The translations under genes and the position numbers were made by a program. The notes under the pieces were generated by a model. It did no database searches and was not told the origin of the DNA. It saw nothing but the letters and a program-made list of their open reading frames with translations. From NCBI GenBank assembly GCA_033442325.1, contig JAWQFM010000014.1, positions 1,596,468 to 1,660,467 on the forward strand: a DNA stretch of 64,000 bases, read 5' to 3'. Every line of letters starts with the position of its first letter. Position 1 is the first letter of the stretch. The stretch comes from Salpingoeca rosetta. Taxonomy: Eukaryota; Protista; Choanoflagellata. Shown piece by piece: positions 35,901 to 37,869 of the stretch.

Positions 35901-37869
35901 AATCAGTGGTATCGCTTCTTCACGTCCATCTTTGTGCATGCAGGCATCATCCACATTGTGAGTACACAACCAGCATACGCGCCAATATCTTCTGGCGTGT
36001 GGGTTCTCTTTCAAGCAACTCACGCTCACGTTCCACTTTCCATCTTCCCGCCTGATCTCGCCACTACAATGACGCCCTCACCAACCGCTCACCCCTGTCA
36101 TCACCACCACCACCACCACCGCTCACCACTGTCATCACCACCACCACCACCACCACCACCACCACTCCCATCAGTTTATCGTTGCGACGTTCCAGTGGAC
36201 GGCTGCCGCCGCCGTTGAGCGCAAATGCGGATTCCTGCGCATGCTGCTCATGTACACCATCGCCTGTGTTGGCGGTACGCGGCCGGGTCGCCAATCTCGT
36301 CTTGTTTGAATGTGTGCAGCTCTTGCCTGGCTGTGCCATGTATGTGTATTCGCGTGCTAGTGGTGGCTGCACCTTGTGCTCGTGCCCATATTTCCTACGA
36401 CCACTGCATGCCCACCTGTGCACGTCCTTCCTCTGTGTGTATGTGCGTCATTTCAGGCAATTTGGTGAGCGGCATCTTCTCTCCGCTGTATCCACAGGTG
36501 AGATGGCGATGTACAAAACGTGTGCTGTGCCGTGATCGCGCCGTGTCTCTTGTCTTTGCAACATCACTTCATCCTCGTTCCACATCACGACGTGTCATGA
36601 TGACCCCCTCCTCCCAAATCTCGTCAGGTCGGCGCTGCCGGCGGAGTGTTTGGCGTTCTCGGCATCTCCATTGTTGATCTCTTCCACGTACGATCATTCC
36701 CGGTCATGTGTTTTGCACCACTCGTCATCCATTGTCATCCGTGGTGCACACACACATTCGCACACATTCACACACAAACACACGCACGAGAAAGCAATGC
36801 CCTGTGCGTACTGCACCTGCCTTTCTCATCAAGCTCTTTATGTGTGTGTGTGTGTGTGTGTGTGTTTGTTGGTGATTCGTTGGCAGTCGTGGCCGGTGAT
36901 TGAACGGCCGATGTCCAAGCTGCTGTCACTTCTCATCGAGGTGAGCCAGGCACGCGCACATGCACGTATGTACATGCACACGTATGTACATGCACACGCC
37001 ATGTACCACAACTAACCGCCCCTCCCCCCAACATGTCATTGCGCACCATCAGATTGCTGTTCTATTCTTCATCGGCACTCTCCCATGGATCGACAACTTT
37101 GCTCACATCGGGTACGTGGCGACACGCACGCACACACACACACACACACGCACGCACACACACACACACACACACACACACAAATTACGGCTCTCTTTTC
37201 ATGTATTGCGTATGAACCTTAGCTAATCCATTCCCCCTTTCCCTTCAACATACATGTTCTAACTCCGCCCAATCCTTCCTGCAGCGGATTTGTGTTTGGC
37301 GCCGTCTCCGCGGTTGTGTTTCTCCCATACGTCACCTTTGGCAAATTCGATGCCGTCAAGAAAGGGTGAGGTGTTCATGTTTGGTTTTGACCTCACGGGG
37401 TTGATTTCTGCTCCTGTTGTCGCTTCTCATAAGTGGGCATTACCTGCCACAGTCACAACACACTGCCCACAACATCCACTCTTTTCCTTCGCAATCCTTC
37501 TGTATCAAGCGCTCACCATTGACGCTCACCTGTGTCCATTCGACACCTGCAGTGTACTGCTGTGCGTGTGCATTCCGCTCTTGATTGCGCTCTTCGCTGT
37601 TGCTCTCATTCTCTTCTACGAAATCCAGGACTCTGAGTTCTGCCCGGGCTGTGACGCAATCCAGGTAGCGTTGTGTGTGTGTGTGTGTGTGTGTGTGTGT
37701 GTGTGTGTGTGTGTGTGTGTGTGTGTGTGTGTGTGATGCAATTCACTTGTTAGCTGCGTGCACCTCACATCTTACATGTCCATCCCCCCTCCCCCAATGC
37801 CACCACCATCTCCGCCGTTGTCAGTGCATCAGTTGGGTCTCTGGCCTGTGCAACAGCATCGACTTTTGA
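32987..37869 (+). CDS. SH2-domain-containing inactive rhomboid (iRhom/RHBDF-like pseudoprotease)
   Basis: Exon 1 (32987-33769) encodes an SH2 domain (WFHGRIS...GVFLVRQ...DLIAHY...GGLPCRL). A phase-0 splice joins exon 2 (34110-34655), which ends in TM1 (PWFTIIVTVVQVIVMAAILI). Cys-rich luminal GCCVKDD...RPCCTQSNGTCQVLTRDHCTFLSG...LCSDVSCLKHTCG follows. Rhomboid core PNQWYRFFTSIFVHAGIIH, ERKCGFLR, GNLVSGIF, VGAAGGVFG, LPWIDNFAHIGGF, FLPYVTFGKFD, and C-terminal CPGCDAIQCISWVSGLC. Confidence 0.9.

Follow-up and report, generated by a model that had tools for sequence, protein, structure and literature searches.

The gene described here lies on the forward strand between positions 32987 and 37869 of a 64,000-nucleotide stretch of the Salpingoeca rosetta genome (assembly GCA_033442325.1, contig JAWQFM010000014.1, positions 1,596,468 to 1,660,467; hereafter the window, in whose own numbering coordinates are given), and its joints, splice sites and reading phase divide it into at least 16 coding exons. 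It is best explained, with a probability that we put at about 0.8, as an expressed iRhom-type pseudoprotease of about 805 residues that carries an SH2 domain, and as a divergent, lineage-restricted paralog that lost its catalytic serine independently, off the road that led to the GPx motif of animal iRhoms. The order of domains is a cytoplasmic tail with the SH2 domain, a first transmembrane helix (TM1), the iRhom homology domain (IRHD), which is rich in cysteines, and a seven-transmembrane rhomboid core. The letters of the gene, its expression and splicing, the alignment register of its active site, and the family membership of its core and luminal domain are matters of direct observation.

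iRhoms have been stated to be restricted to metazoans and are defined by a long N-terminus, an IRHD and an invariant proline, which gives GPx in place of GxS (Zettl et al., 2011, PMC3149277); in the same study, alanine-to-proline replacement kills Rhomboid-1 and AarA. A review from 2019 keeps the same GPx definition and describes iRhoms as conserved in metazoans (PMC6451368). A review of the rhomboid superfamily from 2025 makes no mention of choanoflagellates (PMC12615303), and a full-text search for literature tying iRhoms to choanoflagellates or Holozoa, or to SH2 domains in Monosiga, found nothing relevant. The sequence-only reading of this DNA had used the definition by the invariant proline, in agreement with the two former sources. 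It had noticed that the fourth transmembrane helix (TM4) of the gene reads GAAG, with alanine in place of the serine and without the proline, and had proposed either an intermediate in pseudoenzyme evolution, in which the proline came later, or an independent inactivation, and in addition an active IRHD-bearing ancestor.

The exon that supplies TM4 (36628..36687, 60 nt) is flanked by a cag acceptor on its 5′ side and a gt donor on its 3′ side, and its translation, V-G-A-A-G-G-V-F-G-V-L-G-I-S-I-V-D-L-F-H, agrees with the V-G-A-A-G-G-V-F-G reported before. The codon at the nucleophile position is GCC (36637-36639), approximately residue 673 of the 805. The gene region (32850-37900) was compared with four public runs from four studies, of which two are DNA-type (X6, 2018; X9, 2024) and two RNA-type (X17 and X18), in the form of Logan contigs, in which the main allele is visible and rare variants can be hidden. 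The DNA contigs of X6 and X9 each cover 36175-36761 with 0 differences from the window, each RNA run yields one long spliced contig across the gene (4,410 nt in X17 and 4,916 nt in X18), eight GT..AG joints are recorded in these spliced contigs, and none of the four runs has an entry in the tables of other letters or of indels. The window, both DNA runs and the spliced contigs of both RNA runs thus agree on the GCC codon, with no variant, and TCC, which would have restored the serine, occurs in none of the four sets of assembled contigs. The coordinates of the X18 contig, followed through 36456-36494, 36625-36687, 36887-36938 and 37051-37110, arrive exactly at record position 2345, which corresponds to 37284; therefore, only the 60-nt exon at 36628-36687 lies between its neighbors in the mRNA, and no room is left for a different exon that would supply TM4.

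An artefact, in which the true codon is TCC (Ser) or the mature mRNA takes TM4 from another exon, might be suspected because the assembly is indeed faulty within the window, 2 kb upstream of TM4 (34640-34856). That fault is without effect on TM4, and an artefact is exceedingly improbable given that four runs from four studies hold no differing letter over the gene region, that both DNA contigs agree with the window throughout 36175-36761, that the RNA coordinates fit exactly this exon, and that a contig of this kind may lack rare variants but would still display the main allele.

The TM4 exon found no match in the PDB, either alone (20 aa) or within its 99-aa open frame; because it is too short for such matching, the register of the active site was fixed through relatives. 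The GAAGGVFGVLG of the gene aligns without a gap to the GANPAVYGLLG of a paralog on contig C21 of the same assembly. The TM4-TM6 exon of a second paralog, on contig C3, matches human iRhom1 and iRhom2 (E 1.5e-13 and 1e-12, respectively), with its T-G-A-S-P lying ungapped on V-G-P-A-G and with no active rhomboid among its PDB matches. The link to active enzymes is provided by a protein of the metamonad Anaeramoeba ignava (P0097), which aligns with Haemophilus influenzae GlpG such that GASG falls on the catalytic GLSG, HLLLN on HILFN and NFAH on NAAH, and with human iRhom2 such that GASG falls on GPAG. From this ungapped register it follows that the second alanine of GAAG occupies the nucleophile position and the first alanine the position of the iRhom proline. 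The claim that serine was replaced by alanine in an IRHD-bearing rhomboid that has no proline at the preceding (−1) position therefore holds, the IRHD exon of the gene being matched to iRhom1 and iRhom2 as described below.

Among the features of an active rhomboid protease (MEROPS S54), the GxSG of TM4 is absent, GCC encoding alanine in DNA and RNA alike; the HxxxN of TM2 lacks its oxyanion asparagine, which is valine in this gene (alignment column 1277) and asparagine in P0097, P0099, P0094 and P0081; and the general-base histidine of TM6 is retained, as had been noted, in LPWIDNFAHIG at 37053-37111. The family alignment shows that both TM2 histidines are kept as well. The earlier remark that GCC is a single base from TCC is correct, yet it carries little weight, because a second residue of the catalytic site, the TM2 asparagine, is also gone. 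Since the nucleophile position holds alanine and the TM2 asparagine position valine, and the TM6 histidine is the only catalytic residue left, the protein is almost certainly a pseudoprotease, as judged from its sequence.

Serine-less hydrolases occur in other families, and the retained TM6 and TM2 histidines could be taken to mean that the protein is still a protease, which employs another nucleophile or the active site of a partner. This is highly improbable. Neither the nucleophile position nor the positions next to it hold a serine, threonine or cysteine (G-A-A-G-G), the oxyanion asparagine is absent as well, and the retained TM6 histidine says little, because the histidine column is H in nearly all members of the family, clearly dead ones included. 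Moreover, serine-to-alanine replacement is the standard dead control for rhomboids and abolishes activity in every rhomboid tested (PMC3149277).

The membership of the gene in the iRhom subfamily is carried by several parts of the protein. The TM2 exon matches the Pfam Rhomboid model (PF01694) with 23.3 bits against a cut-off of 22.6, and the exon with the last cysteine block (35597-35695) matched only iRhom1 and iRhom2 chains among all solved structures (E 0.0025-0.004). When the exons were entered as separate fragment rows, they tiled the alignment of family proteins collinearly and without interruption, starting at the RPCC block and finishing at the C-terminus. A different layout, with individual exon rows placed beneath a long backbone, scattered the exons and was dropped, since a profile from it would have been meaningless. 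The rhomboid-like core, which has a seventh helix, is closest to iRhoms; a cysteine-rich IRHD with GCC, RPCC and C..C..C blocks lies between TM1 and TM2 (exons 34857-35695); approximately 400 residues of cytoplasmic N-terminus precede TM1 (exons 1-2); and the catalytic serine is replaced by alanine with the histidine kept. Among the defining features of iRhoms, the invariant proline before the serine position is missing, G-A-A-G standing in place of GPx.

The SH2 domain (PF00017) is found in exon 1, where the full 77-position Pfam model is matched with 28.8 bits against a cut-off of 21, above the gathering score and with the FLVR arginine motif. The same RNA contigs splice this exon to the rest of the gene. 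The SH2 exon is 38% identical (E 5e-43) to that of a gene from another species (P0001), with WFHGRIS and FLVRQN conserved, and relatives occur also in marine metagenome contigs. Searches with the SH2 exon, by words and against representatives, returned only P0001 and P0002 as true relatives, all other matches being SH2 kinases and adaptors without a rhomboid domain; the word and SH2-exon searches of the libraries did not return the full-length product of the gene itself. An SH2 domain was looked for upstream of the C21 and C3 paralogs without success, and none was seen in any of the 44 full-length relatives, most of which were judged by eye. The fusion of SH2 and rhomboid domains thus looks restricted to a narrow lineage. 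A short motif, WFGV(D/S/A), recurs in the cytoplasmic tails of the family, at 33170-33200 in the window and in the N-termini of P0001, P0070, P0081, P0094 and L042. Because this motif stands upstream of the SH2 domain in the present gene, it suggests that the SH2 domain was inserted into a pre-existing iRhom-type tail.

The family was surveyed by means of a degenerate DNA pattern for the motif of the seventh helix (TM7), FLPY[IV][TS]FG[KE][FW]D, which carries no information on TM4. In the assembly (55.4 Mb, 68 contigs), the pattern finds three loci, all of the iRhom type: the present gene on contig C14 and the two paralogs on C21 and C3. In metagenomes it finds 21 contigs, all 21 of which contain iRhom-type genes. 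Two word searches added fragments and 44 full-length proteins, including S. rosetta PTSG_07830, Monosiga brevicollis MONBRDRAFT_27089, a beetle “inactive rhomboid protein 1-like” protein, an Anaeramoeba “rhomboid-like protein” and many EukProt open reading frames; the labels “animal-type” and “choanoflagellate-type” rest on a few named members plus similarity. Across 56 family sequences, TM4 reads GADP in 17, GANP in seven, GSDP, GPSG and GASP in six each, GAGG in three, GCDP and GASG in two each, and GPDP, GTNP, GGSP, GSSG, GCSG, GPSP and GAAG in one each. GAAG is found in the present gene only (1/56). All animal-type contigs have GPSG, apart from the vertebrate-like ones with GPAG, and thus many animal iRhoms, by their sequences, keep the serine beside the proline. 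Two vertebrate iRhom1-like metagenome contigs with GPAG (L037 and L039), which differ by two residues from the human PDB sequence over a comparable stretch, presumably represent host or contaminant DNA; only their TM4 motif was read, and they were left out of alignments and trees.

The three IRHD genes of S. rosetta have three different motifs, namely GAAG in the gene with the SH2 domain, GANP in the C21 paralog and GASP in the C3 paralog. The C21 paralog (approximately 382.8-388 kb; L022, L021 and L017) is PTSG_07830 (P0070, 628 aa, “hypothetical protein”), with 100% identity exon by exon, which marks the assembly as that of S. rosetta or of a nearly identical strain. Its TM4 reads T-G-A-N-P, its TM6 histidine is kept, and its place is in the large G[AS][DN]P clade, which is represented in many transcriptomes and by M. 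brevicollis MONBRDRAFT_27089 (GTNP). The C3 paralog (approximately 4.8-7.8 kb, minus strand; L009 and L023) reads G-A-S-P, keeping the serine and the TM6 histidine and having a proline at +1; its relatives P0027, P0028 and L028/31/38 are GASP too. Contig C21 bears another rhomboid gene at approximately 235.2-236.1 kb (L013, L015 and L018), in which a V-G-A-S-G TM4 follows an iRhom-like GFVISGLFS...YQV; its sequence points to a probably active relative of the secretase type, which would be useful as a control from the same genome.

Three proteins have the full catalytic set of asparagine, GxSG and histidine: P0099, Anaeramoeba P0097, which lacks an IRHD, and the beetle protein P0094, which possesses one. 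P0081 retains asparagine, serine and histidine, yet has the −1 proline (GPSG). P0097 (478 aa) combines its canonical catalytic set with a core and a C-terminal CxxC...CIP that match human iRhom2; its E values are 3e-36 against human iRhom2 and 1e-8 against GlpG, and the iRhom-type core is therefore older and wider than Holozoa. P0094, from Zophobas morio, is named “inactive rhomboid protein 1-like isoform X2” in NCBI and has an IRHD-like cysteine-rich loop, an EF-hand-like N-terminus, the TM2 asparagine, G-S-S-G and the TM6 histidine; as far as its residues tell, the automatic name “inactive” may be wrong. A metagenome contig of 1,255 nt (L030, SXGS01609867.1), too short to reveal an IRHD if there is one, holds an iRhom-type core fragment with M-G-A-S-G, NWAH and FLPYISFGKWD. 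Outside the animal clade, the −1 proline is seen in P0081 (EukProt comp7585, 628 aa; GPSG), P0062 (GPDP) and P0030 (GCA_041443025.1; GPSP). The TM6 histidine is lost in a few members: L042 (from a metagenome), which belongs with P0092 and P0093 to the GAGG clade, has asparagine in its place, P0085 (GSDP) has glutamine, and P0096 (GASP) has asparagine.

The place of the gene within this family was examined with a neighbor-joining tree on 247 columns, from which the four motif columns were excluded and in which the exon rows were taken column by column. The gene falls inside the IRHD family and is about equidistant (approximately 45-50% identity) from all members, the best sums over separate exon comparisons being those with P0081 and with its own paralog P0070. 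It stands alone on a long branch, with at most 20% support for any grouping. In 200 bootstrap replicates, its partner is the set of animal GPSG sequences alone in 1%, the C21 clade in 0%, the GASP type in 4% and P0081 in 2%, and in about one-third of the bootstraps of this distance method it joins a loose group that includes the animal iRhoms. A maximum-likelihood (ML) tree (LG+C20, 44 rows, support given as ultrafast bootstrap (UFboot)/SH-aLRT), which contains the reference proteins only and not this gene, recovers an IRHD clade (94/90), a group of animal iRhoms with the GASP type (92/98) and the large G[AS][DN]P clade; P0062 (GPDP) pairs with P0059 (GADP) (100/99), and P0081 (GPSG) stands beside the GSDP clade (94/92). 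In this tree of references, neither loss of the serine nor gain of the −1 proline is confined to one clade; each recurs in several, and each therefore took place in more than one lineage. As far as the sequences allow, the family has seen several independent events in which the serine was lost or neutralized, and the −1 proline arose on more than one occasion.

These patterns bear directly on whether GAAG is a surviving intermediate between an active IRHD rhomboid and the animal iRhoms, in which the serine was lost first and the proline added later. The gene does possess an IRHD without the serine and without the −1 proline, S. rosetta is a member of the animals' sister group, and the low support for its position, with the loose group including animal iRhoms in about one-third of the bootstraps, leaves some space for such a view. 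It is nevertheless improbable. In many animal-type iRhoms the proline is followed by a retained serine (GPSG), and therefore the proline did not follow the loss of the serine in that lineage; the group joined to the animal iRhoms (92/98) is the GASP type and not this gene; GAAG occurs nowhere else among the 56 sequences, and the gene pairs with the animal iRhoms alone in 1% of bootstraps; and the −1 proline arose also inside clades that otherwise lack it (P0062 and P0081). Consequently, an orphan sequence on a long branch gives no grounds for treating GAAG as an intermediate, and the gene does not show that the proline came later.

Of the two options offered by the sequence-only reading, independent inactivation is, on the sequences compared, the better one, and it fits the loss of the serine to aspartate or asparagine, to glycine, or to alanine in different clades. 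The gene looks like one of many separate active-site losses rather than a stepping stone towards the animal form. That the ancestral IRHD rhomboid was active is plausible from the members that keep the serine in a canonical or near-canonical motif (beetle GSSG, Anaeramoeba GASG and L030 GASG); the part of this proposal that would follow from a basal placement of such proteins stands less firmly, their basal position reaching 22-78% in the neighbor-joining trees and falling at open forks in the ML tree. A broader history may be offered tentatively, as something rather less than an even chance: IRHD rhomboids would form a pre-animal family that started as active enzymes and was converted into pseudoenzymes repeatedly and by differing routes, and the S. 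rosetta copy with the SH2 domain would be a lineage-specific dead scaffold wired to phosphotyrosine signaling. The routes would include replacement of the serine by aspartate or asparagine together with a proline at +1, its replacement by glycine, its replacement by alanine, and gain of the −1 proline on more than one occasion.

The clients of iRhoms include ADAM17 and EGF-family ligands, membrane proteins whose trafficking or stability iRhoms control (PMC3149277; PMC6451368). By analogy, the present protein would be unable to cleave substrates and may act as an iRhom-like holder or escort, which binds other membrane proteins and steers them through its rhomboid fold and luminal domain, and its cytoplasmic SH2 domain may recruit it to, or place it under the regulation of, tyrosine-phosphorylated partners. 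We infer from these parallels a holding and steering role that is tied to phosphotyrosine signaling by the SH2 domain. Several points weigh against the view of the gene as an independently inactivated, lineage-restricted pseudoprotease. Its inactivity is read from the sequence, and its client proteins and SH2 ligand remain putative. The taxonomy of most of the transcriptome and environmental sequences compared is unlabelled, and few are named. The tree position of the gene was obtained by a distance method on 247 columns and not by ML, and with a best grouping of 20% it may yet be a deep one. Finally, the contigs of the SH2-bearing P0001 and P0002 lineages end after the first exons, before the core and thus before TM4, so that the age of GAAG is not datable from them.

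The remaining structure of the gene is as follows. The coding part of exon 1 (32987..33769, this and all following exons on the + strand) comprises the cytoplasmic N-terminus with the WFGVDD motif and then the SH2 domain (approximately 33446-33700), as supported by Pfam and RNA; the X18 RNA contig covers 32850-33767 and is joined to 34108/34110 by a GT..AG intron. Exon 2 is correct in the window from 34110 to 34639, where RNA and DNA contigs match, and encodes a low-complexity acidic/basic linker and TM1 (QFTPWF...), which is conserved in exon 2 of the ortholog on L001. The assembly fault follows at 34640..34856 and adjoins a (TG)56 array; approximately 196 nt of coding sequence, corresponding to the start of the luminal domain, are absent from the window. 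All four runs depart from the window after 34639 with identical letters, which read in frame S-F-K-P-I-T-S-Q-R-D-V and match the ISFKPTVSSRDVQ of the ortholog, and by arithmetic the size of 196 nt fits the contig bookkeeping and the reading phase alike. Next in the IRHD comes the exon of the first CC motif (ELHFGCCVKDDEGFE, 34857..34901), which is represented by a 47-letter RNA piece from 34855 and has cag/gt boundaries. It is followed by an IRHD exon at 35035..35116, the end of which is observed and the start of which, adjoining a CAC repeat, was derived from phase and an AG. The exon of the RPCC...C motif (35347..35409) is reached by the joint 35116>35347, which is GT..AG in both RNA contigs, and aligns to the RPCC of P0070, P0081 and L027. 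The exon of the last cysteine block (HCTFLSGIWQSDAQLCSDVSCLKHTC, 35601..35695) has the iRhom1/iRhom2 PDB match and is left by the joint 35693>35884.

The rhomboid core proper starts with the TM2 exon (NQWYRFFTSIFVHAGIIHI, 35886..35957), placed by the Pfam Rhomboid match and RNA bookkeeping, and the exon at 36175..36274 (RNA piece 36175-36273, joint 36273>36456) runs from the end of TM2, with valine at the oxyanion asparagine position, to TM3. The end of TM3 and the L3 loop are encoded by 36457..36497 (GNLVSGIFSPLYPQ; joints 36273>36456 and 36494>36625). After the TM4 exon come the TM5 exon (SWPVIERPMSKLLSLLIE, 36887..36940; a 52-letter RNA piece and joint 36938>37051), the TM6 exon with the retained histidine (GTLPWIDNFAHIG, 37053..37111; placed by RNA bookkeeping and aligned to the catalytic histidine column), the exon with the start of TM7 and the family motif VFLPYVTFGKFD (37285..37365; RNA piece 37284-37364), and the exon with the remainder of TM7 and the start of the C-terminal cysteine motif (FCPGCDAIQ, 37553..37664; RNA piece 37552-37661), which is 47% identical to the C21 paralog. 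The last exon (CISWVSGLCNSIDF, 37825..37869, stop TGA) was assigned from the open frame, an AG acceptor and the family alignment. Added together, the exons come to 2,418 nt, which is precisely what the coding sequence occupies on the X18 contig and by arithmetic gives approximately 805 residues.

With its long branch, its unique motif, its low-complexity linker and no close full-length ortholog recovered, the gene might be regarded as a decaying duplicate, which is still transcribed but functionless and heading for loss. This is unlikely, since no stop interrupts the frame of the 16 or more exons, their splice sites are canonical, both RNA studies show one and the same spliced form, the family-specific motifs are kept throughout, and the SH2 exon with its phosphotyrosine-pocket motifs is 38% identical in another species and has relatives in marine metagenomes. 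The intact frame, the spliced RNA and the conserved SH2 exon are signs of selection. A maintained pseudoprotease, inactivated independently of the animal iRhoms, remains the preferred interpretation.

Reviews have presented iRhoms as regulators of ADAM17/TNF and EGF-receptor signaling that arose in animals. The present gene resembles the animal iRhoms (human RHBDF1/iRhom1 and RHBDF2/iRhom2, and Drosophila Rhomboid-5) in its long N-terminus, its cysteine-rich IRHD between TM1 and TM2, its seven-helix core and its lack of a working catalytic site, and it shares with them the motifs FVHAG, SWxxxxRP, LPWIDNFAH and FLPYxxFGKFD and the C-terminal CxxC...C. By contrast, it has no −1 proline (G-A-A-G instead of G-P-A-G or G-P-S-G), carries an SH2 domain in its tail, pairs with the animal sequences alone in 1% of bootstraps, and resides in a choanoflagellate, whereas the literature knows iRhoms from metazoans only and by their invariant GPx proline (PMC3149277; PMC6451368). 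Because the architecture is present in choanoflagellates, it is likely, from the sequences at hand, that IRHD rhomboids are older than animals. The GPx proline marks a single clade and not the whole family of IRHD rhomboids, and the point of interest for specialists is a pre-animal IRHD family in which the active site has been remodeled repeatedly. Through the SH2 fusion, a scaffold of the rhomboid type could come under the control of tyrosine phosphorylation, a testable possibility in a unicellular relative of animals that is genetically tractable; if the history of repeated conversion is true, tyrosine-kinase signaling was tied to iRhom-type control of membrane proteins anciently and independently.

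Compared with its paralogs PTSG_07830 on C21 and the gene on C3, the present gene has the same collinear architecture from TM1 to the C-terminus, with 47-61% identity per exon and the TM7 pattern in common, but it differs in its motif (GAAG as against GANP and, with the serine kept, GASP), in its SH2 domain, none being detectable upstream of either paralog, and in its position, since the large G[AS][DN]P clade includes the C21 paralog and the animal iRhoms group with the C3 type, while this gene stands alone on its branch. It resembles the serine-to-alanine mutants of active rhomboids (GlpG, Drosophila Rhomboid-1 and AarA) in its fold family (PF01694) and in a G-x-A-G motif with the histidine intact; unlike these laboratory mutants, it is natural, has also lost the TM2 asparagine, and is set apart by its IRHD, its seventh helix and its SH2 domain. 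It belongs to the same core subfamily as Anaeramoeba ignava P0097 and the beetle protein P0094, the latter with an IRHD-like loop and the former without an IRHD, but both of these proteins keep the TM2 asparagine, GxSG and the TM6 histidine and, on these residues, look catalytically competent. The family of IRHD rhomboids, with GAAG, GASP, GANP, GPSG and GSSG forms that can be assayed, thus offers a natural test case for the conversion of an enzyme into a pseudoenzyme.

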